Shown here piece after piece: positions 3,998-62,500 of a DNA stretch of 64,000 nucleotides. Position 1 is the stretch's first letter; every line of letters begins with the position of its first letter. The notes under the pieces were generated by a model. It worked only from the letters and a program-made list of their open reading frames with translations, was not told the DNA's origin and ran no database searches. The translations under genes were made by a program, and so were the position numbers. Origin of the DNA: Zancudomyces culisetae HAW-14-8 (taxonomy: Eukaryota > Fungi > Kickxellomycota); contig JBNJNM010000012.1 in assembly GCA_052426225.1 (NCBI GenBank), positions 930,001-994,000 of the forward strand. Direction: 5' to 3'.

Positions 3998-3999
3998 CG

Positions 4000-4072
4000 T
4001 GCCTTCTGTCGGAATCGAACCGACGACCTTCTGCTTACTAGGCAGACGCTCTGCCAACTGAGCCAAGAAGGC
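4000..4072 (-). tRNA. tRNA-Thr (anticodon AGT)
   Basis: Reverse complement GCCTTCT TG GCTC AGTTGGCA GAGC G TCTGC CT-AGT-AA GCAGA AGGTC GTCGG TTCGATT CCGAC AGAAGGC A folds as a full cloverleaf; no encoded CCA; T8 run just downstream (A8 at 3990-3997). Confidence 0.97.
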
Positions 4073-4079
4073 GTTGTGT

Positions 4080-4468
4080 TGTCGGAATTTATTTTCCATT
4101 TGTCGGTCTTATCCGACTTTACTGCTTTCACTAGTATTATGTTTATTTACTACCAGTAAGCGGTAGGACCTTAGTTCTTTTGTTAATATTGTTTTATTAT
4201 AATAAAGTGTATACTAAATACTAATCCGAAAATAAGATGCTAAAAACATAGAAGAGAAAAAGCAGTGCTTAAATGCATTTTCCTCGTATATACTAATATA
4301 TTAAAATACTATGAATAATATAAAAACCATCCGAAATTAATTAATATTTGGGAAATGATGATTTACGCATAGTGAAAAACCTCATAGGTGAAAAGCACTA
4401 GGTAAATCATCACATCTCACTCGCTATAACCCGAGTGAGACGCCCATCTGTCGATCTTTGATGCGACA
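4080..4468 (-). repeat. Family A 3' LTR (389 bp)
   Basis: TGTCGG...GCGACA, adjacent to the PPT (AAAGGGGGGGGAGAAC on minus strand, ~4469-4484). Confidence 0.95.
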
Positions 4469-4482
4469 GTTCTCCCCCCCCT

Positions 4483-7400
4483 TTAAGCGCGAATTGAAGG
4501 GTCGCGAATTTGTTTGAATCTTCTAAGTCGAGTTTGCAGTCGTGGGCCTACATCTGGAATCATGTGCTCGGATTCGCGGTACAGTTTCAGGCTGTCTCCA
4601 TTACACAGTTCTCTTCTTCCTGTGTTATCAGTAATTACATAAACCCCTTTGTTTAACTCCCTAGTAATTTGGTATGGTCCTTCCCATGTTTTGCCTAGCT
4701 TTAACTTATCTCCTTCTACTAACCTAAGTACAGTATTACCAATATTAAATTTAAATATCTTTACTCTCTTATTATAGCTTTTTTCATCACGCTTTTTTGC
4801 TACTAGGTTATGCTGGTGAGCTAATTTTCTAAGTTCGGGTAATTGGTCGTTTATGGCTAAAATACGAGAATTGACTAGCTCTTCTTCGTTCTCTATCTCG
4901 CCATTATATTTCCATGTTGTTGATAACTGTGGTTGAATTCCATATAGTAACTGTGCTGGACTATATTTAGTCGATTTGGATACCAATGTTCTTATTATCA
5001 ATAATGATTTCCAAAGAAAAAGATCCCAATTTTTCATGTCAGTCCTACATTGTTTCCGTAAAGTATTCTTAAGTGTCTGGTTTAACCTCTCTACCTGGCC
5101 GTTACTTTGCGGTCGGTAGGAGGTACTCGGAGTGTGTTCAACTCCTAACCAATTGAATACATTAGTGGTAGCCTCACTTACGAAGCCGGAGCCTCGATCG
5201 GTTATTATCTGCTGCGGAATGCCATAATGCTGAATAATATGGTTCATGATGAAGCTGATAATTGTTTCACTGGTGATGTTAGAGACTGCTGCCGCTACAG
5301 GCCATTTTGTGCAATAATCTATTGCAGTCAAAATGTACCTATTGCCACTTTCTGTTACAGGTGAAATAGGACCCACGGCGTCTATGCCGAAAATTTCGAA
5401 TGGTCTTGAGCTTATAATCGGTTCCAATTCATGTTTTCTAGATTTTCCTCCATCATAAAACTGACATGTATTACATGTTTTTACTACCTTCTCAACAACT
5501 TTGAATAACCCTCTTCCACAGTATTTTTCGGTAACTCTTCTCAGTGTACTTCTAATGCCCTCATGACATTCGTCATGTATTTTCCTCACCTCTAACTCAA
5601 CATTAACTTCATGTAATAATTCTTTGTACTGTTGTCCAACTTTCTTATAAAGCTTCCCTCCTTTGACTAAAACTTGTTTGGCTCTATTCCTTACTTTATT
5701 CCTGATTTCCGGTGTTGCATTGTGTGGATACTCTGAGGTGCTGATAAAATGTTTAATTGCTTCGTACCATGCCAAATCAATTGAATAAACTTCTAAGGGT
5801 TCCTCGTTTGCTACGGTTAAAGGATTACGTGATAAGATATCCGCTGGGTTTGTGCTACCCGCTATGTGTTCCAAGTCGTAATCATAGTTACGCAAAATCA
5901 TGGCCCACCGGGCCAGCCTACCTGTGATTTCTGCGCTGTTGAATAGTTGCATAAGTGATTTGTGATCGGTTCGTATTGTAAACCTGGTTCCCCAAATGTA
6001 GTACTTAAATTTTGTCACAGCCCACACCACTGCAAGTCCTTCGAGGTGTGAGATGGAATAATTCTGTTCGTGAACGTTTGTGGTTCTGCTGATATATTCG
6101 ATTGGTCTCTCACCAGTTGCAGTCATTTGTGATAAAATTGCGCCTATACCGTTTTTGCTTGCGTCTGTGGTTATGACAAATGGCTTTGTCCAGTCCGGAT
6201 GTATTAGAACAGGTGCTTCCATCAATTCCTGCTTCAAAATATTTAGTGACTCTTGTTTCTCATTGTCCCAACTCCATGCTGTATTTTTTCTTAATAATGT
6301 TGTAAGTGGTTTAGCGATGCTCGCAAAGTTGTTTACAAATTTACGGTAGTAACCTAATAATCCCAATACTGATTGTAATTCTTTAACATTAGTTGGTGCT
6401 ATTATTTTACTTATTGATTCAACTTTACTTTTACTGGTTGAAATTCCCTTGTCACTAATGTGGTGACCTAAATACTCGATTTCCCTTTTTCCAATATGAC
6501 ACTTGTCTCTATGCAGTTGGATTTTTTGCGTTTTAAATAGGTTAAATACTGTCCTAAGATCTTCTTTGTGCTGTTCTGGAGAGTCAGAAAACACAACTAC
6601 ATCATCTACAAAAACTATTGCTGACTTCCACAAAACTGGGGACAGGACCTTCTCCATGGTCCTTTGAAACGTTGCCGGGCTGTTGGTTAAGCCAAACGGC
6701 ATGACGTTATAATGGAAGCTTCCGTGTCCTGGAATGGAGAACGCTGTCTTCTCTTTATCCTGTTCTCTTAATTTGATCTGCCAAAACCCACTCATGGCGT
6801 CAAGTGTGCTAAATATTCTAGCACCTGACAACGCCATGAATAGGTCTTCCACCGATGGGAGAGGGTACGCGTCTTTCTTGGTTATAGCATTAAGACGTCT
6901 GTAGTCTGTACAGATCCTCATCTTCCCGTTTTTCTTCCACACCACCACCAGTGGAGAACACCAATCCGATTGCGATGGTGATATGATTTTTTTTTCTTCC
7001 ATGAGCTTAAGTTCCTTTTTAACTTCCTCTTGCAATGTTTTGGGTATTCTATAAGGTCGGAGCTTGATTGGATTATTATCAGTTAATGTAATTATATGTT
7101 CGGCTACTGTTGTTTGTGTTAGCTCTTGCAGATCACTTACAAAAATATCTTTATATTCTTCCAAAAGATCTGTATACATATTTTTTAAAATAATGTCTTC
7201 ATCTGATTCACTTTGACATTCTTTTAATAAAAAATAGACCTCCGTTTCTTTGTGATTACTTAATTCGACTGGTATAAAAAGATTAAGCATTATGTGGATA
7301 TCCGAATTTTCCAGAGGTAGTATTAACTTTGGAACTGAAAGATCAATTTTTACTTTATATTTTACGAGCCAATCGGTTCCTAAAATAAGCGCATCGTCAT

Positions 7401-8856
7401 CACGGTTGATAATCAGTAAGTTTATTGGAAAAGTTGTATCTGATATTTTTATAGGTACGTCATGTACAATACCCAGTACCGGATGGCGATTGCCGTCTGC
7501 TGTGATTATAGACTGAGTACTTTTCTTGTCCGCCTCAATTCCACATTTATTTAATAATTTTAAAGTTATTATCGAGCATGCAGCTCCTGTATCGATTACG
7601 GCAGCCGCTACTACTCCAAAAATAGTTACTTTAACCTTACAGTTTGTGCTTTGCATGCTGTCAACGACTAACTCGTTAACGTCGGGCCGCCTTGCCGAAA
7701 TTCCAAACGTGTAAAACTCGTCGCACATTGCTGGAGAAATATCCAAAAGTTGAGGTAAGGATATTTTGATCTGCATTTTTTTCAACTCTTCGGCCAGTGA
7801 AAACTCGTTTTTACTAGCTGCTCTAATATTTGTGTTGTTATTAGTATCTGCAAGTAAGTTTGTTGGATCACTGGGTTCAATATTTTGCAATGAAACTTGT
7901 CCTTCTTGGTTATTATTTTTACTACGTTTTCCGCTTTCCCTCTGTGAACTTTCACTCTCTCTGCGGCGTTTCTCAAGTGCAAAAACTTCTTCATCAACGT
8001 TCCCCGCTTCTTCTACTAACTCCACTATATTCACATTTGGGTTAGTTACCTTTTGGTCCTCGCGGTTGTTTGTACCACCATTTCTTCTTCTGCACTCATA
8101 TTTATTATGCCCTCGTATTCCGCAAGATTCACACACAATCTTGTTATACTGTCCTTGTCTCCTATCACGTTCATCTCGCTCCTTGAACCTACACTCGATT
8201 AATTTATCTACGTCTGCATTAATATCTGCACGCTGTGCTGCAAATAATTTCTCCAACCTGCCTAGCAACCTGTCCTCAATCTTGCTTTCCAATTCTTCTT
8301 CTTTTATTTGCGTCTTCTCCATAACTGGCCCTACTGAAATTCCAGTATATCTTTGTGTACTGTCCTTAACGACAACTTTGTTCACTTGTTTTGTAGTTAA
8401 AAGGTTTTTAATCAGAACAAAAGCCTCTTCCCATGTTTTGGGATTGGTACTGTTTATTTGGGTTCTCAGTGATGTGTTAATTGTTCTTACAAAACAATTA
8501 AGTTTGTAGTCATCATCCTTAATTCCTGCCCTCTCAAATAACTCCTCTAACTCCCATTCAAACTCATCCATGTCCTGGTATTCGTCTAACTTCATTCCGT
8601 TGAGTTTCTCCCACACTGCATACTTGCTGTCCTCTTCTTTGAACTTGTTTGTAAACATTGTCTTAGTGGTTTCCCAGTTATTGAATTTTCCTTTGTACTT
8701 CCTAAACCAAATGGTCTCCTTGGTTCCTAAGTAAATGCGCATAAACTCCACTTTCTCTGTATCACTCCACCTGTTGTACGATGCTAATAACTCGTAGTCT
8801 TCAATCCATTCTGTAGCATCCATCATGGATTTGGAATCAAATTTTGGTAACTGCAT
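4483..8856 (-). CDS. Gag-Pol polyprotein, family A copy 1 (Gag, CCHC knuckle, protease, RT, RNase H, integrase)
   Basis: CESCGIRGHNKYEC; DTGA protease; MPFGL...FVDD RT; TDAS RNase H; H-H-C-C plus DAVGP/TDRG/ERLN integrase; GPY. The ORF track starts at a GTG inside the LTR (9066); the first ATG (MQLPKFD, 8856) aligns with the Gag starts of the other families. Confidence 0.93.
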   Translation of the reverse strand: MQLPKFDSKSMMDATEWIEDYELLASYNRWSDTEKVEFMRIYLGTKETIWFRKYKGKFNNWETTKTMFTNKFKEEDSKYAVWEKLNGMKLDEYQDMDEFEWELEELFERAGIKDDDYKLNCFVRTINTSLRTQINSTNPKTWEEAFVLIKNLLTTKQVNKVVVKDSTQRYTGISVGPVMEKTQIKEEELESKIEDRLLGRLEKLFAAQRADINADVDKLIECRFKERDERDRRQGQYNKIVCESCGIRGHNKYECRRRNGGTNNREDQKVTNPNVNIVELVEEAGNVDEEVFALEKRRRESESSQRESGKRSKNNNQEGQVSLQNIEPSDPTNLLADTNNNTNIRAASKNEFSLAEELKKMQIKISLPQLLDISPAMCDEFYTFGISARRPDVNELVVDSMQSTNCKVKVTIFGVVAAAVIDTGAACSIITLKLLNKCGIEADKKSTQSIITADGNRHPVLGIVHDVPIKISDTTFPINLLIINRDDDALILGTDWLVKYKVKIDLSVPKLILPLENSDIHIMLNLFIPVELSNHKETEVYFLLKECQSESDEDIILKNMYTDLLEEYKDIFVSDLQELTQTTVAEHIITLTDNNPIKLRPYRIPKTLQEEVKKELKLMEEKKIISPSQSDWCSPLVVVWKKNGKMRICTDYRRLNAITKKDAYPLPSVEDLFMALSGARIFSTLDAMSGFWQIKLREQDKEKTAFSIPGHGSFHYNVMPFGLTNSPATFQRTMEKVLSPVLWKSAIVFVDDVVVFSDSPEQHKEDLRTVFNLFKTQKIQLHRDKCHIGKREIEYLGHHISDKGISTSKSKVESISKIIAPTNVKELQSVLGLLGYYRKFVNNFASIAKPLTTLLRKNTAWSWDNEKQESLNILKQELMEAPVLIHPDWTKPFVITTDASKNGIGAILSQMTATGERPIEYISRTTNVHEQNYSISHLEGLAVVWAVTKFKYYIWGTRFTIRTDHKSLMQLFNSAEITGRLARWAMILRNYDYDLEHIAGSTNPADILSRNPLTVANEEPLEVYSIDLAWYEAIKHFISTSEYPHNATPEIRNKVRNRAKQVLVKGGKLYKKVGQQYKELLHEVNVELEVRKIHDECHEGIRSTLRRVTEKYCGRGLFKVVEKVVKTCNTCQFYDGGKSRKHELEPIISSRPFEIFGIDAVGPISPVTESGNRYILTAIDYCTKWPVAAAVSNITSETIISFIMNHIIQHYGIPQQIITDRGSGFVSEATTNVFNWLGVEHTPSTSYRPQSNGQVERLNQTLKNTLRKQCRTDMKNWDLFLWKSLLIIRTLVSKSTKYSPAQLLYGIQPQLSTTWKYNGEIENEEELVNSRILAINDQLPELRKLAHQHNLVAKKRDEKSYNKRVKIFKFNIGNTVLRLVEGDKLKLGKTWEGPYQITRELNKGVYVITDNTGRRELCNGDSLKLYRESEHMIPDVGPRLQTRLRRFKQIRDPSIRA

Positions 8857-8995
8857 GATTTCTGGTCTCTTAGAATTGACAAATTCTCGTAGTGTCTTAG
8901 TATTGGTAATACTTTCGACAACTGTGTGCTGGTTAATTAATACTTTATTATTATTTTTTGAATTTTTATTTTCTTTATTAAGATGTTTTTGGCTG

Positions 8996-9013
8996 TCCCC
9001 GGTCAAGCCCCCA
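8996..9013 (-). promoter_or_regulatory. Primer-binding site, tRNA-Pro-like (family A)
   Basis: TGGGGGCTTGACCGGGGA, 1 nt after the LTR; resembles the classical tRNA-Pro PBS TGGGGGCTCGTCCGGGAT. Second copy at 13930-13947. Confidence 0.8.
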
Positions 9014-9014
9014 C

Positions 9015-9402
9015 TGTCGGAATTTATTTTCCGTTTGTCGGTCTTATCCGACTTTACTGCTTTCACTAGTATTATGTTTATTTACTACCAGTAAGCGGTA
9101 GGACCTTAGTTCTTTTGTAATATTGTTTTATTATAATAAAGTGTATACTAAATACTAATCCGAAAATAAGATGCTAAAAACATAGAAGAGAAAAAGCAGT
9201 GCTTAAATGCATTTTCCTCGTATATACTAATATATTAAAATACTATGAATAATATAAAAACCATCCGAAATTAATTAATATTTGGGAAATGATGATTTAC
9301 GCATAGTGAAAAACCTCATAGGTGAAAAGCACTAGGTAAATCATCACATCTCACTCGCTATAACCCGAGTGAGACGCCCATCTGTCGATCTTTGATGCGA
9401 CA
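9015..9402 (-). repeat. Family A shared middle LTR (388 bp)
   Basis: Matches the flanking LTRs apart from a 1-bp deletion near 9118 (TTGTAA vs TTGTTAA); PBS on one side and PPT on the other. Confidence 0.95.
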
Positions 9403-9416
9403 GTTCTCCCCCCCCT

Positions 9417-12400
9417 TTAAGCGCGAATTGAAGGGTCGCGAATTTGTTTGAATCTTCTAAGTCGAGTTTGCAGTCGTGGGCCTACATCTGGAATCATGTG
9501 CTCGGATTCGCGGTACAGTTTCAGGCTGTCTCCATTACACAGTTCTCTTCTTCCTGTGTTATCAGTAATTACATAAACCCCTTTGTTTAACTCCCTAGTA
9601 ATTTGGTATGGTCCTTCCCATGTTTTGCCTAGCTTTAACTTATCTCCTTCTACTAACCTAAGTACAGTATTACCAATATTAAATTTAAATATCTTTACTC
9701 TCTTATTATAGCTTTTTTCATCACGCTTTTTTGCTACTAGGTTATGCTGGTGAGCTAATTTTCTAAGTTCGGGTAATTGGTCGTTTATGGCTAAAATACG
9801 AGAATTGACTAGCTCTTCTTCGTTCTCTATCTCGCCATTATATTTCCATGTTGTTGATAACTGTGGTTGAATTCCATATAGTAACTGTGCTGGACTATAT
9901 TTAGTCGATTTGGATACCAATGTTCTTATTATCAATAATGATTTCCAAAGAAAAAGATCCCAATTTTTCATGTCAGTCCTACATTGTTTCCGTAAAGTAT
10001 TCTTAAGTGTCTGGTTTAACCTCTCTACCTGGCCGTTACTTTGCGGTCGGTAGGAGGTACTCGGAGTGTGTTCAACTCCTAACCAATTGAATACATTAGT
10101 GGTAGCCTCACTTACGAAGCCGGAGCCTCGATCGGTTATTATCTGCTGCGGAATGCCATAATGCTGAATAATATGGTTCATGATGAAGCTGATAATTGTT
10201 TCACTGGTGATGTTAGAGACTGCTGCCGCTACAGGCCATTTTGTGCAATAATCTATTGCAGTCAAAATGTACCTATTGCCACTTTCTGTTACAGGTGAAA
10301 TAGGACCCACGGCGTCTATGCCGAAAATTTCGAATGGTCTTGAGCTTATAATCGGTTCCAATTCATGTTTTCTAGATTTTCCTCCATCATAAAACTGACA
10401 TGTATTACATGTTTTTACTACCTTCTCAACAACTTTGAATAACCCTCTTCCACAGTATTTTTCGGTAACTCTTCTCAGTGTACTTCTAATGCCCTCATGA
10501 CATTCGTCATGTATTTTCCTCACCTCTAACTCAACATTAACTTCATGTAATAATTCTTTGTACTGTTGTCCAACTTTCTTATAAAGCTTCCCTCCTTTGA
10601 CTAAAACTTGTTTGGCTCTATTCCTTACTTTATTCCTGATTTCCGGTGTTGCATTGTGTGGATACTCTGAGGTGCTGATAAAATGTTTAATTGCTTCGTA
10701 CCATGCCAAATCAATTGAATAAACTTCTAAGGGTTCCTCGTTTGCTACGGTTAAAGGATTACGTGATAAGATATCCGCTGGGTTTGTGCTACCCGCTATG
10801 TGTTCCAAGTCGTAATCATAGTTACGCAAAATCATGGCCCACCGGGCCAGCCTACCTGTGATTTCTGCGCTGTTGAATAGTTGCATAAGTGATTTGTGAT
10901 CGGTTCGTATTGTAAACCTGGTTCCCCAAATGTAGTACTTAAATTTTGTCACAGCCCACACCACTGCAAGTCCTTCGAGGTGTGAGATGGAATAATTCTG
11001 TTCGTGAACGTTTGTGGTTCTGCTGATATATTCGATTGGTCTCTCACCAGTTGCAGTCATTTGTGATAAAATTGCGCCTATACCGTTTTTGCTTGCGTCT
11101 GTGGTTATGACAAATGGCTTTGTCCAGTCCGGATGTATTAGAACAGGTGCTTCCATCAATTCCTGCTTCAAAATATTTAGTGACTCTTGTTTCTCATTGT
11201 CCCAACTCCATGCTGTATTTTTTCTTAATAATGTTGTAAGTGGTTTAGCGATGCTCGCAAAGTTGTTTACAAATTTACGGTAGTAACCTAATAATCCCAA
11301 TACTGATTGTAATTCTTTAACATTAGTTGGTGCTATTATTTTACTTATTGATTCAACTTTACTTTTACTGGTTGAAATTCCCTTGTCACTAATGTGGTGA
11401 CCTAAATACTCGATTTCCCTTTTTCCAATATGACACTTGTCTCTATGCAGTTGGATTTTTTGCGTTTTAAATAGGTTAAATACTGTCCTAAGATCTTCTT
11501 TGTGCTGTTCTGGAGAGTCAGAAAACACAACTACATCATCTACAAAAACTATTGCTGACTTCCACAAAACTGGGGACAGGACCTTCTCCATGGTCCTTTG
11601 AAACGTTGCCGGGCTGTTGGTTAAGCCAAACGGCATGACGTTATAATGGAAGCTTCCGTGTCCTGGAATGGAGAACGCTGTCTTCTCTTTATCCTGTTCT
11701 CTTAATTTGATCTGCCAAAACCCACTCATGGCGTCAAGTGTGCTAAATATTCTAGCACCTGACAACGCCATGAATAGGTCTTCCACCGATGGGAGAGGGT
11801 ACGCGTCTTTCTTGGTTATAGCATTAAGACGTCTGTAGTCTGTACAGATCCTCATCTTCCCGTTTTTCTTCCACACCACCACCAGTGGAGAACACCAATC
11901 CGATTGCGATGGTGATATGATTTTTTTTTCTTCCATGAGCTTAAGTTCCTTTTTAACTTCCTCTTGCAATGTTTTGGGTATTCTATAAGGTCGGAGCTTG
12001 ATTGGATTATTATCAGTTAATGTAATTATATGTTCGGCTACTGTTGTTTGTGTTAGCTCTTGCAGATCACTTACAAAAATATCTTTATATTCTTCCAAAA
12101 GATCTGTATACATATTTTTTAAAATAATGTCTTCATCTGATTCACTTTGACATTCTTTTAATAAAAAATAGACCTCCGTTTCTTTGTGATTACTTAATTC
12201 GACTGGTATAAAAAGATTAAGCATTATGTGGATATCCGAATTTTCCAGAGGTAGTATTAACTTTGGAACTGAAAGATCAATTTTTACTTTATATTTTACG
12301 AGCCAATCGGTTCCTAAAATAAGCGCATCGTCATCACGGTTGATAATCAGTAAGTTTATTGGAAAAGTTGTATCTGATATTTTTATAGGTACGTCATGTA

Positions 12401-13790: not shown

Positions 13791-13948
13791 GATTTCTGGT
13801 CTCTTAGAATTGACAAATTCTCGTAGTGTCTTAGTATTGGTAATACTTTCGACAACTGTGTGCTGGTTAATTAATACTTTATTATTATTTTTTGAATTTT
13901 TATTTTCTTTATTAAGATGTTTTTGGCTGTCCCCGGTCAAGCCCCCAC

Positions 13949-14337: not shown

Positions 14338-14344
14338 GTGTTGT

Positions 14345-15931: not shown

Positions 15932-17159
15932 TGTCGTAGAATAAAGAAATTTTATTTATACATAATTTAAAAACAATATAATTTGTAACTCTAAGTAAGT
16001 ATAATACTTGATAACTAATACCACTTAAAGATTAACTTGTACGGATATATTGAGTGATTAGAATCTAATATTTATTAATGTGAACCAAAAACCTGATAGA
16101 TAAAACTCTCACAATAACTCTACCAAACCTTAAATAAAAACTAATTACGCTTAAAGGGATTCAATTTTAATTGTTTTATTATACGTAATTTTAACCAATA
16201 AAACCTATCTAAAATATCTTTATAAAATTGAACTAAAAAATAACTAAAATAAACAAAACTAAACTAAAATATAGCACTATTGTACTATACGACAGCACTC
16301 CCCCTTTAGGCGATAATGCCCTCATTATTTTGAGCCTGTTTAAAGGTAAGTAACTTAGGTCGAAGTCGATTTGAAATTTCGGGAATCAAAATTTAGATTC
16401 ATGGTACTTCTTTAGCAAGTCTCCGTTGACTAAATCTCTATTTCCGAACTGATCTGAGATTAAGTAAGCCCCCTTAGTAAACTTTTCCATAACTGTATAT
16501 GGGCCTTCCCATAAACTTTCAAGCTTTCCTCTTTCATACTCTACTAACTTTAACACTTTTTCTCCAACTTGAAATTTTGTAAATTTAACGGTTTTATTAT
16601 ATCTTACTTTTTCAGATTCTTTTGCTGCTACAGCTTTGCGAACCCCGATTTTTCTTATTTGCGGTAAGTTACTCTTCATTAGCTCCAATCTACTTTTAAC
16701 TTGTTCAACTTCATCTTCAATTACACCATTAGATTTCCAAGTCGAGGGAATGCACATTTCGGTTCCGTACATCATCTCGGCGGGTGTATAACCGGTACTC
16801 TTGCTCTCCATAGTTCTCATGATGAGTAACACCTTCCACAGGTAACGATCCCATTATTTTTGTCTTTCCTACATATCTTCTGTAACAAATTTACTAACGT
16901 CTTGTTCAATCTTTCACACTGTCAGTTGCTCTGCGGACGGTATGAAGTGGTAGGACTGTGGTCCAGCTGTAACCAGTTCAATACCTCGGTAGAAACGTTG
17001 CTGACAAAGCTCGAACCCCTATCTGTTATTATCTTCTGTGGTACACCGTAGTAAGTAATGATAATGTAAATTATAAAGTATACTATAGTTTCACTTAACA
17101 AGTTGTCTACGGCCATGGCTATCGGCCATTTCGTGCAATAATCTATAGCTGTTAGAATA
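15932..17159 (-). mobile_element. Truncated Gypsy element: 3' LTR (15932-16294), PPT and decayed integrase (16306-17159)
   Basis: TGTCGTAG...TACGACA LTR; PPT; IN fragments TDRGSSF, YRPQSN, WEGPY; frameshifted tail IPEISNRLRPKLLTFKQ; cut at the TA of the Tc1 element. Confidence 0.88.
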
Positions 17160-18727: not shown

Positions 18728-18729
18728 TA

Positions 18730-22636: not shown

Positions 22637-22674
22637 ACAGTAAGGGACACCTATTGGGCAACTTAGCCAGTCCC
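22615..22674 (+). promoter_or_regulatory. Predicted -1 ribosomal frameshift signal (slippery site plus pseudoknot)
   Basis: G GAA AAC (22615-22621) in the gag frame; 6-nt spacer; stem GCCCAGTAG/CTATTGGGC; loop GGGAC can pair with GTCCC (22670-22674); the -1 frame is open into the protease. Confidence 0.75.
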
Positions 22675-25600: not shown

Positions 25601-26232
25601 ATCCACGCTTCTCAGTCATAATCCCTCGTACTCAAGTTTTAAATCCTGCCTCCTCTGATAGATCCAAACGACTATCTGATATCCACCAAGAACTGAAGTT
25701 TAACATCTCCCTTGCCCTTGAAGACCATGAGAAATACTACAACCGAAAAGTATCATCACAACCTGACTTCAACATTGGTGATCTTGTCTATCTATCAACT
25801 AAAAACATCAGGACTCAAAGACCAAGCAAGAAGCTTGACTATCGGAAACTTGGTCCATTCAAAGTATTGGAAAAGATTGGACAAAGATCATACAAACTTC
25901 AGCTACCACACACAATGAAGATTCACCCAGTATTCCACGTCAATCTCCTTGAACCTTGTAAACCAGATCTGATCCCAGACAGACTATCAAAACCGCTTCC
26001 ACCTGTGATCATTGATGGTCAAGAAGAATATGAAGTTGAGAAAATCCTAGACAGTAAAATATTTGGTAGAACTGTCAAATACCTGGTACACTGGAAAGGA
26101 TACCCAGACACTGAACGTACCTGGCAAACATATTCTGACTTAGCAAATGCAAAATATCTTGTCACTGAATTCCATCGTCACCATCCTGAAAAACCAAAGC
26201 CACCACAAATGCTTCACGGAGCTCAGCCTTAA
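22616..26232 (+). pseudogene. pol: Pol (protease-RT-RNase H-integrase-chromodomain) with one in-frame TAA at 23293-23295
   Basis: DSGA, YIDD, TDAS, DFIT/SDRG/ERVN, GPF, chromodomain EYEVEKILD...YLVHWKGY...TW; ORFs 22654-23295 and 23296-26232 are in the same frame. Confidence 0.9.
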
Positions 26233-29200: not shown

Positions 29201-29696
29201 ACTCAGGTCTCGGATCACTTCACGGGTTCTGATTGCTGTAATATGAATGTTTTTAATGTCGTATATTATTAATATAATAATAATAAAACAATAAATAAAC
29301 CGTTTCAGTATCAAGTGCTATTTGCTATTAATAGTATATGTAAACGTATATGTAAAGTATTATCTGGTAAAAAAAGGCTAAAGATGCTATTTTCATTGTC
29401 CACTCTCGTTATATTCGGTTTGTTATTCAATTTACTATCTTAGATCATTTTTACTATTTATGCTGCTAGCACTCATTGGTATTTATCTTCTCTAAGAAAT
29501 CGCAATTGATACGCCAAAAAAAAGTATTTAGGCGTTATACTACAAATCAAAACCGAGCAATACTTCAATAGATATTTAAACAGTATACTACTAACTCTAT
29601 CTTATTTACTCACTTGAAAATTGCAAGAGTCGATGAGCTAAAATAATAATGAAAAATATATAGGAAATGAAAATTTGAATTTTGAGCAAAAATGAT

Positions 29697-29767
29697 TGCC
29701 GTTGCCTGGAATCGAACCAAGGTCGACGCGGCCACAACGCGATGTACTGCCACTATACTACAACGGC
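29697..29767 (-). tRNA. tRNA-His (anticodon GTG)
   Basis: GCCGTTG TA GTAT AGTGGC AGTAC A TCGCG TT-GTG-GC CGCGT CGAC CTTGG TTCGATT CCAGG CAACGGC A; G-1 not encoded (eukaryotic pattern); T5 run a few nt downstream. Confidence 0.95.
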
Positions 29768-29775
29768 AAGTGTGT

Positions 29776-32700
29776 TGTTGTAATTTTAGTTTGCAGAAAA
29801 TTTCTCAGAAAATTTTCGCAACTAAACCTACAAAAAGTTCTGCTAATAGAGGGGGATTGTTACTGGAATAAGTTTTACTTTATTTAACCAGTCAACCCTA
29901 CCTTTTTAGCTTATATTTAATTTAGTTTTATGTATTTATTACTTCAATAAATGCGATAAAACTGGGTAAAATTACGCCCAACTCCTAAAATTTGGTGTGC
30001 AAAACAATTAATTTTGGTCCAAAAATTAGACTCTGATACCTTTCTGATACCCTTTGAAAATTGTGTTACGCTTCACTACCTATGTTTTTTTTTGGTTTTA
30101 GGTAGGTTTTTGCTCAAATCACAAATTTCAATTTTATAGAGTAAAATCAAGTATTTTAGAGCTAATTTGTATTTTATTTAATGAATAACTTTTAAAAATA
30201 AAAAGATAAAACCACCAAACTTGTGGTGGGGTTACTAGTAATATACTAGTACCTGACTAGCTATTTTATTAGAACTTTATATAATAGAAACTTAAAATAA
30301 AATAATCAAAACTTAATATTGACTCACTTTTTGGGTGATAATTTCACCCTAGTAATCCCAGATTACTAGCTCGAACACCCGAGATAACGGTGGTTATTCG
30401 GTGTTTGAGAAGCTGTATGCTGTTTATCCAATAGTTTAGCTTGGATAGAACTAAGCATACAACACCTCCCCCCCACAGCTTACACTCAGGGTTTCAACCT
30501 TTGTGTGCAAGCTTTAATTCTTGAAGCGTCTCAAAGTGCTCCGAATATTCCCTGGCGTGATCTCGGGAATCATATGTTCTGCCTGGCGATATGGTTTAAG
30601 GCGGTCTCCATTAACCAAGTCACGGTGTCCTGCTGGATCTTGGATAACGTATGTGCCTAACCTAAGTACTCTGGTGACGGTATATGGTCCTTCCCAGTAG
30701 GGTTCCAATTTTCCTGAAGGCTGCTCAACTTTTCTGAGCACCTTGTCACCTTCCTTGAAACGGTAGACAGTTACTTGTTTGTCATACCTTTGCTTCATGA
30801 CCTGGTTTGCCTCAGCCATTTTCTCAACTGCTAGGCGCCTTATCTCGGGGATACCAACTTGGATGGCGTTTACCCTTTGAATAATCTCTTCCTCGAGATC
30901 TTCCACTTCTGCAGGAGGTCTCCAAGTTGCTGGGGTTTGCAACTTTACTCCATACAGTAACTCTGCGGGGCTTTTATCTGTAGATCTGTTCTTCATAGTC
31001 CTGATGACTAACAAGACCTTCCAGATATAAGTATCCCACTCTTCCTTGTTTCTCTCAGAAACTTTGGCTAACACATTACGGAAAGTTCTATGGAAGCGTT
31101 CCACTTGACCATTAGCTTGGGGACGAAATACGGTAGTTGGGGTGTGGTGAATCCCCACCTCTTCGTAAAACTTAGAGGACAATTCTGATGTGAATGATGC
31201 TCCTCTGTCAGACATAAGTTGTGCGGGTATACCGAACTCTTGCACCACTTTGGTGAACAAGAAGTTAATCACAACTTCCGAAGTAGCATGTGGCACCGCC
31301 ACAGCAATTGGCCACTTCGTCAAGTAGTCTATCGCAGTTATGACATACTTGTTGCCTGATTTTGCTATAGGATTTATAGGTCCTACAAAGTCAATCCCCA
31401 TTATTTCAAACGGTCGCATGGCTAGGAAGGGATGGAGCGGCTCTCTAAAGAATTTACCTTTATCTTGTTTTTGGCAACGCTCACATTCTCCTACAACTTC
31501 CTCAACTACCTCTCGCAACCCTTTACCGAAGTACTTGTTTCGGGCGCGATTCAGGGTATAGAGTATTCCTTCATGACCTTCTTCGTGAATCTCCCGGATT
31601 TTCTCCTTTTGATTCTCATGGTGAAGTACTTCCCTTATCCCAAACTGCTTTGTTACTTTGCATAACTTATTATCCAGCAGCTTGAACAACTTAGCCTTTT
31701 CCCGAAGGCTTTTCCTGAAGTCGTCATTAGCTCTGTTTGGGTAAGTTCTATCCCTTAGGTAGTTGGAAATAGCTGCGTGATGTAACACACCCATCGCCGC
31801 TATTTCTACTTCCTCGGCCTCTGCTCCTGGGGCTACTTCTTCCGTGATTCCTGGATTTCTTGACAGGAAATCAGTAGGGTTTACAGCACCCCTAACATGT
31901 TGGAATTCGTAGTCAAACTCCCGCAGGAACATTGCCCATCGTGCTACTCTGCCATTTAAGTCCTGGGTGTCAAAGACCTTTAGTAATGCCAAATGGTCTG
32001 TCTTCACCACAAACTTTTTCCCCCAAAGGTAGTGTTTAAATTTCTTTATTCCCCACACTACCGCAAGGCCTTCCAAATGAGTAATAGCATAGTTGGCTTC
32101 ATGAATGTTTAGGGTGCGACTGGCGTAAGCTATTGGGCGTTCTTCGCCGTTTATTTCTTGTGTTAAGATAGCTCCCAGTCCGACCCCAGAGGCATCCGTG
32201 GTCAGGATAAATTCCCTGTCCCAATTGGGATGTGCCAGTGTAGGAGCTTGAGTGAGCAGTCTCTTTAGCTCCCGCACCGCCTCTTTACATTCTTCAGACC
32301 ACTCCCAAGAGACATCTTTCTTTAGGAGGTTTGTCAACGGTCTGGCCACTAACGCATAGTTAGGTATAAACTTCCTATAGTACCCAGTGAATCCTAAGAA
32401 GGATTGTATTTCTTTAACATTTCTTGGGTCTATTAGAGTGTTTATACTCACTATTTTATCCTCATTTGTACTTATACCATTCTTACCAATGGTATGCCCC
32501 AAGTAACGAATCTCGGTCTTGCCGAATTCGCACTTATCTTTGTGCAATTGCACTTTACCCTTCCTGAGACATTCAAAAACTTCTTCTAAATGTCCCTTGT
32601 GTTCCTCCCAGGTCTTGGAGTACACAATTATGTCGTCGATAAACACAATCGCACAACGCCATAAAACGTTTGCCAACACTTTCTCCATCAGTTTCTGGAA

Positions 32701-52868: not shown

Positions 52869-54241
52869 AATATATTGCTTAGTTGCTAATACTTTTATAT
52901 TAATGATAATTATTTTAGATAATTTTACATAACGCTAAAATAAAAATTATTATAATAAATGAAACTTTGTATATAGTTGATGTATAATATTAAGTCAAAT
53001 GTTAGCTGATAAAATAAATCTCAGTAATTGTATAAGCATTACTTAAAATTTTGGCATAGTACGGGTTATGATATAAATATTTGGTCTTGGGACATTTTGT
53101 GTGATTATAGCCAATACTTTAGATTAAAATTTATTATGAATTATTAGTATTAATCTCATAAAAAATACTAGATAATTTATATTTTCAATTAATTCAATTT
53201 TAATAATTATAAGTATATCTGTTAAATAGATAATTGAGCCAATACAATTTTTCAATCACAGTATAATAAATTTACTATCTAAACAATAAATGTATATAAT
53301 ATCACTTTTATAGCTATCTATGTTATCTATAATTTAGCTGTCATATTAATTTAGTTATTTAGATTTAACCTAAATAATTGTACTAAATTAAATATAAAAT
53401 AAATTTAAATTGTATATATACAGAATTTGATGGTGCGTTTCGTATAGACAGAATTTTACATGATATTCATGTCGCGGATCAATTAACTATTCTTGTTTGC
53501 TGACTGTATATCTATCTCGTTATATTATTTAATATGTATAGTAAATACACAGATATTATATTGAAATTATAGACTAATTGAAATAGTAACATTAAAACCA
53601 TTTTTTAAATTTTTGCAGATGAAAGTTTATGAATTTATTTAAATTTATCTTGTTCATTCGAGTTCAATTAATATTACTTAATATCGTTATACATTTAATC
53701 GATTTTGCTATTATATAAAAATATATTATATAGTTGATATTATTATGAACCTGAAATATTAGCTTCTTATGTGATTAGGTAAGTTTAATTATACTGATTA
53801 TGTGATTAAACTCAGGTCCGGATCTCTTCAAATATTTTTATTTCAGTATAGTATGTTGTATAATATATATATTGTATAATAAATAAAAAAGATATGTAAC
53901 AATATAGTATATAAAGCTAACTTAAATAATTAAATTATAAAAACGGAAAAGGCAATTAATATCTGCCCTGTTATAGAAAAGGATACTTGTTATTTGTCCA
54001 CGATCGAATTTTTCACTGATCGTACTGCGTTCAAACGAAGTAAAATGGTATTATATTACTGATATAGTTATAAATACATTAATGGATATGTTCGCAATTG
54101 AATCAAAATTGATTTGTTCGATAATGGCATAATTTCATTATGCAACTTATTTCAGATCAGTAATTGCGTATGATCGCTGTCATAATTTATATTGCCGAAA
54201 TCACAATATAATGCAAAAATATAAAATTATTAATGTTAAAA

Positions 54242-54314
54242 TAGAGCTGTTGGGGATCGAACCCAAGACCTTCTGCGTGTGAAGCAGACGTGATAGCCAC
54301 TACACCACAGCTCT
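54242..54314 (-). tRNA. tRNA-Val (anticodon CAC)
   Basis: AGAGCTG TG GTGT AGTGGCT ATCAC G TCTGC TT-CAC-AC GCAGA AGGTC TTGGG TTCGATC CCCAA CAGCTCT A, followed directly by TTTT; A1-U72 pair. Confidence 0.93.
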
Positions 54315-54317
54315 AAT

Positions 54318-54399
54318 CGTCACCTGCAGGATTCGAACCTGCGCTCCCAGAGGGAAATGGCTTAGCAGGCCACCGCGTTAACCACTCCGCCAAAGTGAC
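54318..54399 (-). tRNA. tRNA-Ser (anticodon GCT)
   Basis: GTCACTT TG GCG GAGTGGTTAA CGC G GTGGC CT-GCT-AA GCCAT T TCCC TCT GGGA GC GCAGG TTCGAAT CCTGC AGGTGAC G; long variable arm, G discriminator. Confidence 0.96.
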
Positions 54400-54405
54400 C
54401 TATGT

Positions 54406-57400
54406 TGTCAGATACTAACGTTTTTATGCTAGTATCTCTTATATTTAATACTACTATGCTAAATATAAAACTATGTTATTCTATTTTTAAATAATACTAT
54501 GTTCTATTTCAGACCTAAGTTGTATATCTTTTTATTCCTAAATAAACTATTTATTGTGTAACATTTATAAAAAACTAACTAAAAAACTCTTATATAAGAT
54601 ACTACTAAAAAATTATATTTAAAAACGAAATGTTATTAGAAAAAATCACTAGGATAAAAAAAACTAATGCATTTCGGATTCGTAACCAGTTACGAATCAA
54701 TTGTCAATTTGCTATATGACAGCTCCCCCCTTTTAAGCGCGGATGCCCTCATTCCGCCGGGACTGCTTAAATCGCTTCAACTTAGTCTTCAGTGTCGTTG
54801 TTACATCCGGAATCATATAGTTGCTGGTGTGGTACTTCTTAAGCATATCTCCATGAGCTAATTCTCTGTTACCTTCTTGATCACTTATAACATACGCACC
54901 CTTGCTTAAAGCTCTTTCAACCGTGTAGGGGCCTTCCCAATAATGTTCGAGTTTTGACCTCTCCATGTCTACCAACTTAAGAACCTTCTCACCTACCTCA
55001 AACCTATGGTACGTGACACCCTTGTTATACCTTGTTGCCTGTGAACTTTTGGCTTCGATAGAACTCTTATGAGCCAGATTTCTCAACACAGGTAAGTCGT
55101 CATTTATCTGTTTCACCCTGCTTAAAATCAATTCCTCTACGTTTTCAATTTCTCCATTGTACTTCCATGTAGTGGGTAGTGAAAGCTCAACGCCATACAG
55201 CATCTCCGCCGGACTGTATCCAATCGATTTATTTCTCAAAGTTCGTATTACCAGTAGAGTTTTCCATAGGTAGGCATCCCACTTCTGTTTATCATTCCGA
55301 CATTGCTTAATCAATACATTCATGAGAGTTTGGTTCAGTCGTTCCGTCTGACCATTACTCTGAGGCCTGTACGAGGTCGTGGGAGTGTGGTGTATACCCA
55401 ACCACTCGTACACTTGAGTCGCACATTCAGATAGGAAGCTGGACCCACGGTCACTAATCAGTTGTTGAGGTACTCCAAATGGTGCTATGACCTCATTTAT
55501 AAGGAAATTTATTACGGTGTTACTTTGTATATTGGGTACAGCTAATGCAATAGGCCATTTCGTGAACAGGTCTATAGCCGTCAAGATGAACCTGTTTCCA
55601 CTAGCGGAAATCGGTGCTATTGGCCCGATTGCGTCAATTCCGACTATCTGGAAAGGTTTCGTCGTAACTATTGGAACCAGTGGATGCCTTTTACTTTTAC
55701 TACCCTTGTATAATTGGCATACCGGGCAACACTTTACGATTTCCTTGACCTCTCTATATATATTCCTACTGGTATACCTCTGTGATACACGCAACCAGGT
55801 GTTTTCTATGCCTTCGTGCCCTTCGTTGTGTATTGACTCAACTACTTGGCGGATATTTCCTCGATGCAAAACCTCTTTCAAACATCCTTTTACTTCTTTC
55901 ATTAGTTTACCCTTATCGATTTTATATAGTTTAGATCTTCTCTTTAGCCTTTCTTTGTACTCCACATCTATATTGTCTGGTAACTTCTTTTCCGTAAGGT
56001 ACTGTTTTATATCTTCGTATTCTAAAATTTCCATGGCAAACACGTCGAGCTCTACATCATCCTGTTCATTCTCATTCTCAGTAACTAGTCGAGACAGAGC
56101 ATCGGCTGGGTTGATAATTCCGGGTAAATGCTCTATGGTATAATCAAAACTACGTAGGACCATAGCTTAGCGTGCAACACGACCTGTTATATCTGGGCTA
56201 TTGAACAATTGGATTAACGACTTGTGGTCGGTTCTGATTCTGAACTTTCTACCCCATACGTAGAATTTGAACTTTTTAACTGACCAAACCACGGCCAAGC
56301 CTTCCAAATGGCTTATGGAGTAGTTTTTTTCTGCTGGAGTGGTGGTTCGGCTTGCATACTCTATTATTTTCTCACCTTCGCTGGTAATCTGAGATAACAC
56401 ACCTCCTATTCCTATTGCTGATGCGTCCGTGGTGATCACAAACTCGACGGTCCAGTCTGGATGACCTAATACCGGTGCAGAAGACATCAATACCTTCAAT
56501 TGTCTAAGCGCATCTTCCTGCTCGCCACCCCATTCCCATTTTACAGACTTCTTCAGTAGTTGCGTTAAGGGACTGGTGACCCGAGAATAGTTAGGAATAT
56601 ATTTCCTGTAATATCCAGTCATCCCTAATGCCGATTGCAATTCCTTAACGCACGTCGGAGCCTTTATATTGTTTATAGCTTCCACTTTCTTTGGGCTGGT
56701 TCCTATCCCCTTGGCGGATATTGTGTGCCCTAGATATTCGAGTTCTGTAAATCCTATAACGCATTTATCCCGGTGGAGCTGTATTTGATTCTTTTCTAAT
56801 AATGCTAAAACCTTATCCAAATCTTCCGCATGCTTATTGATTTCTTTCGAGAAGACGATAATATCGTCCACAAAAACTACGGCACACTTCCATAACAGAG
56901 GTTGTAGTACTTTTTCCATTGCGCGTTGGAACGTCGCCGGACTATTCGTTAGTCCAAACGGCATGACGTTATATTCAAAAGCGCCACTCCCTGGGATGGC
57001 AAAGGCTGTTTTTGCTTTGTCGGCGCTATGCATACGGATCTGCCAAAATCCGCTCATGGCGTCAAGGCAGCTAAACACAACCGCGCCAGACAAAGCCATG
57101 AACAGATCTGCGATAACAGGGAGCGGATAACTATCCTTTCTTGTCACCTCATTGAGCCTCCGGTAGTCGGCGCAGACGCGTATCTTTCCGTTTTTCTTAT
57201 GGACTATCACCACTGGAGCGCACCATTCAGAAGTTGTCGGTGAAATAATTCCCTGTTTTTCCATTTCCTTTAATTCATGCAATACCTGCTCTTGCTGCCT
57301 ATGCGGTATCCGGTAAGGCCTGAGCTTGATAGGTGTCTCATCTTTTACCTGGATACGATGTTCTATCACGCTAGTTTGAGTGAGCTCGGAAAGGTCGCTA

Positions 57401-59578: not shown

Positions 59579-62500
59579 TGTCTGTGTAATATTTAAAATT
59601 TATATTATATTACCCGTTATGGGTGCACAGTGTCAATACACTAGTTACTTCCTTCACGGATAGTGTTTAAGCTCACCGTTTATGTTAATAACTGAGTTTT
59701 GTGTAGACACTTGTTATATTTTACTATTGTAGTTTATTTTTTATGATATACTTAATAAAAATTGATAATAATCTTTTTCTTAAAACTAGAAATCCAAACT
59801 CCTATATAAAAGTAATGATAACACGAACTTGTTATCAAGGAAGTAGGAAAAAACCCTCCTAGGGAGAAAAGTCCAATCTTCCCAATAAAATGATAATAAT
59901 AATAATAATAATACTATGACTCATTAATAAATTACCTAACCAATTTCTGACAAGGGGTAATCCATCCATTTCTATATGACAGATACTCCCCTACCAGATT
60001 GGACTTATCGTTGGGACATTTTTAAACCGTCTTAACTTGGTACGTAACGCAGACGACACCTCAGGTATCATGTTCTTACTGTAGTGAAACTGTTTTAGCA
60101 TATCCCCATTGACCAGATCTCTCTTCCCTTCGTTATCCGTTATTATATAAGTTCCCTTGGATAATACATTTTCCACTTGATAGGGTCCCTCCCAGATCTC
60201 CTCTAGCTTACTCTGGGTTTGCTCTGTCATCTTTAGTACTAAGTCCCCTTGATTGAATTTGTACGGTTTAACCTGCTTGTTATATGATTCACGATCCTTT
60301 TCTTTAGCGAGTACGTTATTCCTTACACTATCAGTTCTCATCTCCGGCAATGATGATTTTATAGCATCAATTCGTTCTTGTACTGCAATATCTAGATTGT
60401 CAACATCGGGAGGCGGAGTCCATACGCTAGGGGTAGCAATTTGCACTCCGTATAGCAACTCAGCAGGACTATACTTGGTAGATTTGTTTCTCATTGTCCG
60501 GATTGCAAGTAGCGATTTCCAAATGAACTTATCCCAGTTTTGTTTGTCCTTTCGACATTGTCGCACTAATGCATTCTTCAGGGTTTGATTCAGCCGTTCC
60601 ACTTGGCCGTTGCTTTGGGGGCGATACGGCGTTGTCGGTGTGTGACGAATTCCCAATTCCTTATATACCTGTTCCGCCAAGTCGCTCACAAATCCTGAGC
60701 CGCGGTCGGTTATGATTTGGCTAGGCACCCCGAACCACTGAATAATATGGGTTAGTATAAAACTAATAATGGTCTCAGTCTTTATATTACTTACTGCAGC
60801 GGCCACTGGCCACTTAGTAAAGTAATCAATTCCCGTTAAAATAAATCTATTACCTGTTTTACTCACCGGATTGATGGGTCCAATTGCATCTAATCCAAAT
60901 ATGCTGAATGGTCGCGGGCTAAATATAGGATTTAGGTTGCTTCTTCGTGTTCTTCCACCTTTATATCTTTGGCAGGTGATACATTCATTAACTATTTTTT
61001 TCACAACTTCATATAGTCCTTTGCCAGTGTATTTCTCTTTCACCTTTAGCCATGTGTTTTCTATACCATTGTGTCCCTCTTCATGAATGGTGGATATAGT
61101 CTCCTCAATGTTTTTCTCGTGCAGGACCTCCTTGACTTGTCCTTTTATAACACGGCACAGTCTATCGTTTTTCAGTGTATATTTCCGTGCCTTGTTACGC
61201 AACTTCTCCCGAAACCTCTCATCTGCTCCTCTAGGGTACTCTTTCTCTCTCAAGTAAGTCGTAATAGCCGTGTAATATAGAAAGTCAAGCGTGAGTATGT
61301 CCAGTTCTTCAATGGAAGTCGAGGGTTCATTGGTTGGGAGCCTAGACAACGCGTCAGCTGGGTTCCGCTTTCCCATACAATGCACAATGGAGTAATTATA
61401 GTTGCGGAGTATCATTGCCCAACGGGCGACACGTCCGGTTATGTCTTTACCATTAAACAGTTGTATTAGCGCCTTGTGGTCAGTACGGATGGTAAAATGT
61501 TTACCCCACAAGTATTGTCTTAATTTCTTTACGGACCATACTACAGCAAGTCCCTCTAAATGTGCCACTGAATAGTTTCTCTCATGTGGGTTTAAAATGC
61601 GACTTAAATAGCAAATCGGCCTTTCACCGTCTTCAAATTCCTGGGAGAGGATCGCCCCAATGCCTATAATGGAGGCGTCCGTTGTAACAATAAATTCCCG
61701 CGTCCAATCTGGATGGGATAAAACTGGAGTCTCGCAAAGTTGTTTCTTTAGTTCTTCTACTGCTGACTGATGTTCCGACTGCCAACTCCACACTGTATTC
61801 TTTTTGAGCAGCTTCAATAACGGGGCTACGATTCTGGCATAGTTCTCCACGAACTTTCGGTAGTAACCAGTCAGTCCAAGGAACGATTGAAGTTCCTTAA
61901 CCGACTTCGGCGACTCGGCTTTTTGTATAGCAATTATTTTATCCATACACGTCTCAATACCCTTACCTGAGATGGTGTGTCCTAAGTATGTTAACGAATT
62001 TACGGCTAAACTACATTTATTCTTGTGAAGTTGTATATTGTTAGTTTTAAGAAGCTGTAGAACCTCACGGACATCGACTAGATGTTGTTCAAAGGATGTT
62101 GAGTATACCACAATATCATCTATGAAGACGACCGTAGTCTTCCAGAGCACAGGTGCGAGAGCTTTTTCCATCATTCGCTGGAAGGAGGCTGGGCTATTCG
62201 TGAGCCCAAACGGCATCACGTTATAGCAGTACGTCCCACTTCCAGGAATTGCGAAGGCAGTTTTATCGCGATCTTCCAGCGCCATGGGTATCTGCCAATA
62301 CCCACTTAAGGCGTCAAACGAGCTAAATATGGTGGCACCAGCTAATGCCATAAAAATGTCATCTATGGTGGGGAGAGGATAGGAATCCTTCCGGGTGACT
62401 TGGTTCAGTTTGCGGTAGTCCGCACAGATTCGGAGCTTACCGTTCTTTTTCCAGACTGCTACAACGGGTGAGCACCACTCCGATGTGCAGGGCGCAATAA

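Follow-up and report, generated by a model that had tools for sequence, protein, structure and literature searches.

The locus studied here raises the question of whether a short basic peptide at the C-terminus of a retrotransposon integrase sets the choice of tRNA genes as insertion sites. It lies in a window of 64,000 nucleotides (the whole stretch of DNA that was analysed; contig C12, positions 930001-994000) from the AT-rich, 27.1-Mb genome of Zancudomyces culisetae HAW-14-8, a mosquito-gut fungus. The minus strand of the window carries five coding Ty3/gypsy elements (A twice, B, C and D), present as single open reading frames (ORFs) of 1512-1527 amino acids or as split ORFs, together with one integrase relic. 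Three minus-strand tRNA loci (Thr, His and Val/Ser) each terminate one stack of these elements. The integrases end in a conserved tail, which closes the integrase C-terminal domain (CTD) in a Ty3/gypsy lineage that is without chromodomains and belongs to early-diverging fungi, with a radiation in Harpellales and relatives in Mortierellomycota. In its own genome the tail goes with a radiation whose insertions lie 6-10 nt upstream of tRNA genes and in one orientation. The tail probably does not encode the tRNA choice by itself, since relatives that share it lie away from tRNA genes. The literature that we searched held no description of tRNA-targeting elements in Harpellales, nor of the tail motif.

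A conserved tail follows the integrase barrel

The earlier note had proposed that the stacked coding elements share a C-terminal motif after GPY, and the translated minus-strand ORFs give exactly the tails that it quoted. The motif attributed to the relic at 16306 was likewise found, at 16306-16389 and out of frame. The upstream ORF of the relic stops at HESKF and the tail follows one frame off; intact copies of the relic family elsewhere in the genome read KFMIPEISN in frame. The integrase C-termini of the window are as follows.

4483..4580, minus strand: last 32 codons and stop of element A copy 1, the ORF ending at 4483 with the tail HMIPDVGPRLQTRLRRFKQIRDPSIRA and stop
4510-4563, minus strand: core tail motif MIPDVGPRLQTRLRRFKQ of element A copy 1, from the ORF translation
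4567..4749, minus strand: SH3-like (GPY/F) domain of the A integrase, directly before the tail, from AlphaFold2 strands at 43-93 of a 125-residue segment and from alignment with the Ty3 and prototype foamy virus (PFV) CTDs
9417..9497, minus strand: tail of element A copy 2, identical to that of copy 1, in a tandem dimer with a common middle long terminal repeat (LTR)
16306..16389, minus strand: relic tail LIPEISNRLRPKLLTFKQAQNNEGIIA and stop, in a frame other than that of the integrase remnant at 16386-16832
30514..30573, minus strand: element B tail MIPEITPGNIRSTLRRFKN and stop (ORF translation HMIPEITPGNIRSTLRRFKN and stop), the motif being directly followed by the stop
54733..54816, minus strand: element C tail MIPDVTTTLKTKLKRFKQSRRNEGIRA and stop (ORF translation YMIPDVTTTLKTKLKRFKQSRRNEGIRA and stop)
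59991..60071, minus strand: element D tail MIPEVSSALRTKLRRFKNVPTISPIW and stop (ORF translation NMIPEVSSALRTKLRRFKNVPTISPIW and stop), stacked upstream of C
25777..26229, plus strand: integrase C-terminus of the chromovirus by Pfam, SH3_Tf2-1 and then a chromodomain, with no tail

Pfam domains occur in A and B in the order RVP_2, RVT_1, RT_RNaseH, Integrase_H2C2 and rve, which is the protease (PR), reverse transcriptase (RT) and integrase (IN) order PR-RT-RNaseH-H2C2-IN of Ty3/gypsy elements (Metaviridae). B also gives a weak match to Integrase_p58_C. Neither A nor B has a match to PF00385 (Chromo), and by this Pfam domain neither is a chromovirus. The chromovirus of the window occupies 21416-26232 on the plus strand, and its ORF (23296-26232) contains SH3_Tf2-1 followed by Chromo (8.6e-13). 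The observation that this element has a chromodomain where the others have the tail was thereby borne out.

A search with the last 125 residues of A gave at least 150 matches among 266 candidates in the genome, in at least 12 families, and nearly all of them aligned across the motif. Twelve families were aligned over the last 125 residues, where they share 41-53% identity. WEGPY of the GPY/F module is invariant in this alignment. The tail is a basic segment of about 19 residues that starts 6-7 residues past the SH3-like GPY/F barrel, with the consensus M-I-P-[DE]-[VI]-x3-4-[LI]-[KR]-x-x-L-x-[RT]-F-[KR]. Only 20-35 residues lie downstream of the barrel, which leaves no room for a chromodomain. 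The 19 residues of the tail carry a net charge of +3 to +4, with a conserved pattern K/R-K/R-x-K/R. Most families have KRFK or RRFK, which resembles the K-K/R-x-K/R core of a nuclear localization signal (NLS), yet the invariant positions are M, P, L and F (M100, P102, L112 and F115), with I101, L108 and R114 nearly so. Taken with the profile matches, the residues that are invariant across the 12 families place the similarity of the tails far beyond chance.

Tail-bearing elements abut tRNA genes in one orientation

The targets in the window and the 3' ends of the elements next to them are given below.

3999..4072, minus strand: tRNA-Thr(AGT), target of the A/A/relic stack
4080..4468, minus strand: 3' LTR of element A, starting with TG at 4468, its terminus ...GACA lying 7 nt from the 5' end of tRNA-Thr
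4470..4482, minus strand: polypurine tract AGGGGGGGGAGAA, immediately past the stop codon of element A
29696..29768, minus strand: tRNA-His(GTG), 7-10 nt from the end of the B 3' LTR
54241..54399, minus strand: tRNA-Val and tRNA-Ser pair, the end of the C 3' LTR lying 6 nt from the 5' end of tRNA-Ser

The same association was found throughout the genome. We scored a sample of 63 tRNA genes by an Rfam search, with a proximity cut-off of 1.2 kb upstream. A tail-bearing integrase end lies 341-1035 nt upstream in the same orientation at 23 of the 63, with 0.21 expected by chance. No tail-bearing end was found downstream or in opposite orientation within 2.5 kb of any of these tRNA genes, nor did the C-terminus of any of the 148 chromovirus copies come within 2.5 kb of them (Fisher p=2e-8). 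At 13 junctions of this genome, from eight families and read base by base, the LTR end ...ACA lies 6-10 nt before the mature tRNA 5' end; a contig of a public Z. culisetae assembly has the same junction geometry, again at 6-10 nt. The orientation is the same at all 14 junctions and at all 23 adjacent sampled tRNA genes.

A map of B-boxes and tRNA genes was made for contigs C6-C12, with patterns that recover 14-16 of 20 known tRNA genes (about 70-80%). On this map 30 of the 80 tail copies from core and B families (see the tree below) are adjacent to a tRNA gene, versus 0 of 82 chromovirus copies. In this genome the tail marks a lineage that homes to tRNA genes. The earlier note had gone further in stating that the tail is found only in tRNA-adjacent elements, which holds in the window and against chromoviruses genome-wide but fails for tail-bearing relatives that lie away from tRNA genes.

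Two observations were made in the course of this survey. Chromovirus copies are concentrated near contig starts, the only contig ends that were checked for such enrichment: 22 of 148 lie within 60 kb of one, versus 3 of 150 tail-bearing elements, which suggests subtelomeric accumulation. Behind one D-family element (locus L018:2293-2367; C21:~1497938-1498012) ARAGORN called a tRNA-His with the unusual anticodon ATG, which may be a mis-call or a variant tRNA.

Relatives with canonical and altered tails away from tRNA genes

An integrase tree rooted on the chromovirus places all tail-bearers in one clade. The clade consists of a core (A, C, D and others; support 100/98), of B with an environmental relative, and of a subclade X. 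Within subclade X, four families that we call group V are sister (support 95/94) to the Z. culisetae family P0016 together with P0047 of Smittium culicis. Both P0016 and P0047 have canonical tails, and the P0016-like elements group with an S. culicis element that is not adjacent to a tRNA gene. Group V has ORFs of up to 1561-1595 amino acids, and intact ORFs of this length occur in identical multiple copies, which suggests that the group is presumably active. Its tails, such as GIPNVISTRIISSLRDQ, are without the Met and without RF[KR].

Neither branch of subclade X was found at tRNA genes. All 13 group V loci are without a tRNA within 1.5 kb downstream, and Rfam detected no Pol III (RNA polymerase III) gene on the group V loci. 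On the map of C6-C12, 0 of 9 P0016-like copies and 0 of 9 group V copies are adjacent; for core and B families (30/80) against P0016-like copies (0/9) the Fisher p is 0.026. As the P0016-like elements have the canonical tail and are not adjacent, the canonical tail is not sufficient for tRNA adjacency. The targeted element B also has a tail that is nearer in sequence to that of the non-adjacent P0016 than to those of the core families. Two readings fit the lost motif of group V, namely relaxation after targeting had been lost, which would lend mild support to a role of the tail, or unrelated drift.

The surroundings of the subclade X elements show some regularities of their own. In one group V family, all four copies (L097-L100; C21:2288125-2291514, C6:2118212-2121601, C9:926073-929462 and C21:1145159-1148536) have a 3' LTR end ...ACGACA that is followed 0-5 nt on by the convergent 3' LTR end of another element. 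For L097 the sequence confirms the convergent LTR (family A, 5 nt), and for L100 it agrees with a tail-bearing element next to the copy (4 nt); for L098 and L099 the terminus TGTTG... is the only indication. Neither ARAGORN nor Rfam found a tRNA at the L097-L100 LTR junction. It looks as if tRNA-homing elements also land at the group V LTR end. At C6:2351179-2362145 and C7:372910-379514 a P0016-like element and a group V element follow each other in the same orientation, with the P0016-like one immediately upstream, and the 3' LTR of the former should adjoin the 5' LTR of the latter. Segmental duplication or a composite might explain these pairs, or they may hint at the target of P0016-like elements.

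The tail beyond Z. culisetae

When 1.84 billion representatives were searched with a profile of CTD and tail, 165 proteins scored E<1e-10, and the alignment of many of these extended through the tail; a word-indexed protein search with the tail region gave only two Z. culisetae proteins. Clear tails of the form MIPEV..LRSxLxRF[KR] occur in Z. culisetae, S. culicis, S. mucronatum, Furculomyces boomerangus, Actinomortierella wolfii, A. ambigua and environmental contigs. The relatives from Rhizopus microsporus keep only MIPDV. The nearest integrase relatives are from Harpellales at 42-58% identity, after which identity falls to 32%. A profile scan of metagenomes yielded 39 distant gypsy loci, all without the tail and without a tRNA, and was uninformative.

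The flanks of the external tail-bearers were inspected for Pol III genes. Neither a tRNA nor any other Rfam Pol III gene turned up in the available flank of the S. culicis loci L023 (two elements) and L033 or of A. ambigua L035, or in the 2.5 kb and 1.4 kb of flank of F. boomerangus L036 and A. wolfii L031, respectively. The S. mucronatum contig ends 100 nt past the gene. The earlier note had called for a test of whether the tail, built into a profile, predicts tRNA adjacency across genomes; these five external loci show no such adjacency within the flank available.

The tRNA-adjacent cases in S. culicis differ in geometry from those described above. Two contigs (L032:5161-5540 and L034:5117-5510) hold one such element each. 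One is divergent to a tRNA-Thr, its 5' LTR lying 5-6 nt upstream of that gene. The other is young (LTRs 100% identical) and sits 13 nt past the 3' end of a tRNA-Ser, just after the T-run, in convergent orientation. The orientation lock of Z. culisetae may not hold in Smittium.

Structure and position relative to Ty3

AlphaFold2 modelled the CTD and tail of A from a 38-sequence alignment with a mean predicted local distance difference test (pLDDT) value of 85.9, as a long linker helix and a five-strand barrel. The barrel resembles the integrase CTDs of PFV, Rous sarcoma virus (RSV) and Ty3. The tail of A appears as two short strands (IPD and LRRF; pLDDT 76-82) and that of B as coil (pLDDT 50-60). 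The earlier note had suggested an amphipathic helix. A helix appears in neither model, neither in the strands of A nor in the low-confidence coil of B, and this reading of the tail was dropped. Searches of the Protein Data Bank with Foldseek and VIA returned generic SH3, Tudor and PWWP barrels and integrase CTDs, and nothing specific to the tail.

The alignment of Ty3 integrase (7Q5B) with A starts at the zinc domain and runs through the SH3 barrel, the Ty3 end ...FLKKFVYRPDAYP falling opposite ...LKxYxxSxxMIP. In Ty3 the SH3 fold covers IN 369-433 and the vestigial chromodomain IN 446-511, the alpha0 helix or "staple" that binds Brf1 being IN 448-456 (PMC8632968). The alignment implies an offset of ~1011 between Ty3 polyprotein and integrase numbering, and alpha0 then falls opposite L..xL.RFK. 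The tail would thus occupy the position of the Brf1-binding alpha0 of Ty3, which we infer from position and not from homology. We also co-folded the CTD and tail of A with a host Brf1 exon (L040:1498-1950) and a host TBP C-lobe exon (L037:1492-1920). The inputs were single unjoined exons of intron-bearing host genes, covering the N-cyclin, linker and start of the C-cyclin of Brf1, and the resulting score of 0.00 carries no weight either way.

Selection acts on the peptide

In codon alignments the amino-acid entropy of the tail is 1.01 versus 0.97 in the SH3 domain, and the third-position entropy is 1.46 versus 1.44. Since synonymous sites are saturated while the residues are held, purifying selection acts at the protein level, as strongly as on the barrel. 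A nucleotide-level constraint on the core motif was considered and rejected, the third positions being as variable as in the SH3 domain with the amino acids fixed.

The 6-9 codons past the motif (..EGI..) have a lower third-position entropy, 1.15. These codons, ..[DN]EGI[RHIW][AP] and stop, have GAG GGC ATC in common (window 4486-4509 and 54736-54765, and homologous loci). In A the polypurine tract and then the TG of the 3' LTR come directly past the stop codon, and in nearly all families the codons past the stop are purine-rich. The 6-9 codons past the motif probably overlap a cis-acting signal or an extension at the polypurine tract.

What the tail may do

The reading that we favour, and to which we would give an even chance, is that the tail is a conserved CTD extension that helps docking without setting specificity, the tRNA choice coming also from other parts of the integrase or Pol. 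The tail might be a flexible, extended arm by which the CTD completes the surface that an outer intasome subunit uses to grip target DNA and/or TFIIIB, and it would occupy the place of the alpha0 helix of the Ty3 vestigial chromodomain. Its likely part in the tRNA-homing families is in docking, and perhaps in the orientation lock as well. Specificity would also be set elsewhere, for example in the SH3 loops, the N-terminal region of the integrase or RNase H. A role of the tail in nuclear import is possible as well. Several points weigh against this view. Group V has lost RF[KR] and stands at 0/13 at tRNA genes, which fits a stronger role of the tail. The P0016-like copies, nine in number, were scored by coordinates on the indirect B-box map with its recovery of about 70-80% of tRNA genes. 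The external sample amounts to about 10 loci, and two S. culicis tail-clade elements in it do adjoin tRNA genes, in other geometries. The predicted structure of the tail lacks robustness, with short strands in A and coil in B.

A dedicated and sufficient tether peptide, which would bind a Pol III factor (TFIIIB, TFIIIC or a Pol III subunit) in the manner of the Ty1 NLS/AC40 and Ty5 Sir4 motifs, is improbable in our judgement. The tail does occur in all tRNA-homing families and never in chromoviruses, but the tail-bearers are one clade, and the contrast with chromoviruses therefore amounts to a single evolutionary event. Group V, nested among relatives with canonical tails, lost M...RF[KR] and is at tRNA genes in none of 13 cases, as a tether would have it; the P0016-like subclade of the same genome keeps the canonical tail and is adjacent in none of nine, canonical tails lie without a tRNA nearby at the five external loci (S. 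culicis L023 with two elements and L033, A. ambigua L035, and L036 and L031 with 1.4-2.5 kb of flank), and the tail of targeted B is closer to that of non-adjacent P0016 than to the core tails. The match in position to the Ty3 Brf1-binding alpha0 helix is in favour of a tether, low-confidence flexible predictions suit a short linear motif that folds upon binding, and small C-terminal targeting motifs of integrases have a precedent in Ty1. A more specific version, which we find just as doubtful, takes the tail as a minimal TFIIIB-docking peptide, the functional equivalent or last remnant of the Ty3 alpha0 staple, that is presented by the SH3 domain, would tether the intasome to Brf1/TBP and would enforce the orientation-locked insertion at 6-10 nt. 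Group V would then have lost motif and targeting together, and the non-adjacent relatives with canonical tails would be at other Pol III-like sites or mis-scored.

The tail might instead be mainly a monopartite NLS (K-R-F-K or R-R-F-K) that imports the integrase or pre-integration complex into the fungal nucleus, which would stay closed during mitosis, and has no part in site choice; we consider this rather unlikely. The charge of +3 to +4 over 19 residues, the conserved K/R-K/R-x-K/R pattern, the extreme C-terminal place with its predicted flexibility and the retention of the tail in relatives regardless of insertion site all suit such a signal, and a C-terminal NLS is known for Ty1 integrase. 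The invariant M100, P102, L112 and F115 are mostly non-basic, unlike the conservation of a signal that serves import only, and the presumably active group V keeps intact multi-copy ORFs without RF[KR]. In Ty1 the NLS and the targeting motif coincide, and the two roles are not mutually exclusive. It might also be that a cis-acting signal beside the polypurine tract overlaps the last codons, with the peptide irrelevant, which we regard as very improbable. The tract directly after the stop and the common GAG GGC ATC codons of ..EGI.. with their third-position entropy of 1.15 would agree with it, but the third positions of the motif itself vary as in the SH3 domain (1.46 vs 1.44) with the amino acids fixed, and B ends right after RFKN without the EGI stretch. 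It is largely refuted for the core motif and may still hold for the 6-9 codons after it.

Comparison with known elements

Ty3 (7Q5B, PMC8632968) is similar in that a Ty3/gypsy integrase inserts a few nt from the Pol III start of tRNA genes and the determinant region, putative in our elements, is at and just past an SH3-like CTD. Insertion of this type was found here, the LTR end lying 6-10 nt from the tRNA at 14 junctions. Unlike Ty3, which has a vestigial chromodomain whose alpha0 helix packs against the CTD, the present elements have ~27 residues past the SH3 domain with no chromodomain fold and no predicted helix, and no sequence similarity to Ty3 is detectable in the tail region beyond ...LKK[FY]....P. 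The orientation is fixed here, whereas wild-type Ty3 inserts in both orientations, as the discussion of the Tj1 paper implies (PMC4600332). Tj1 of Schizosaccharomyces japonicus has its insertions 5-11 bp upstream of the mature tRNA 5' end and co-directional with the Pol III gene in every case (PMC4600332). The geometry and the orientation lock of our elements match those of Tj1 (6-10 nt and the same orientation at 14 junctions and 23 tRNA genes), but Tj1 has a gag stop codon where there is one ORF here. No Tj1-like protein was named among the 50 nearest integrase relatives, a comparison that included no direct alignment with the Tj1 sequence.

DGLT-A of Dictyostelium discoideum, a Ty3/gypsy element without a canonical chromodomain, inserts ~15 bp upstream from tRNA genes and contacts the TFIIIC subunit Tfc4 via its RNase H and integrase N-terminal domains and not via the integrase C-terminus (PMC6101501, PMC5006619). 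Given this use of RNase H and the integrase N-terminus, the determinant in our elements need not be the tail. For Ty1 the reports describe a short basic bipartite motif at the integrase C-terminus that is both NLS and AC40/Pol III tether (PMC7459421; bioRxiv 10.1101/2019.12.18.879569). Ty1 belongs to the Ty1/copia superfamily, and its bipartite motif lies in a long disordered region, unlike the single basic patch directly past the SH3 domain here. Ty1 targets a window of ~1 kb upstream and not a single site. The chromodomains of chromoviruses such as MAGGY and Tf1 are comparable as a module after GPY/F that influences target choice, and the chromovirus of the window has one at the same position. 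Those modules are folded, chromatin-reading and of ~50 residues, while the tail is too short and has no Chromo match.

Links to Pol III have been mapped in three LTR-retrotransposon systems, namely Ty1 (AC40), Ty3 (TFIIIB) and DGLT-A (TFIIIC). We know of no targeting determinant for the orientation-locked Tj1. The present fungus offers a comparative panel, with a dozen or more diverged and apparently intact families that hit the same 6-10 nt window in one orientation. Sister families that are not at tRNA genes and have the same or an altered tail provide the contrast for mapping the integrase residues that govern site and orientation. As the first candidate determinant the tail suggests itself; it is short and easily deleted or swapped. 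If it were a tether, no smaller Pol III-targeting module would be known from a Ty3/gypsy element, and it would be relevant to safe-harbour integration tools. Should it be only part of the CTD, which we hold to be the more likely case, the value lies in the contrast set and in the finding that a conserved tail does not equal an address.

Other features of the window

Element A forms a perfect tandem dimer at 4080-14347, with the arrangement LTR-internal-LTR-internal-LTR, a spacing of 4934-4935 bp and two identical ORFs of 1527 amino acids. Other families also occur in tandem arrays, for example at C11:283819, 288685 and 293551. The window also contains two copies of a Tc1/mariner-like DNA transposon, at 17283-18729 and 45233-46674, with 91-96% identity, and one copy has minus-strand ORFs at 17386-17715 and 17752-18396 with DDE-type transposase sequence.

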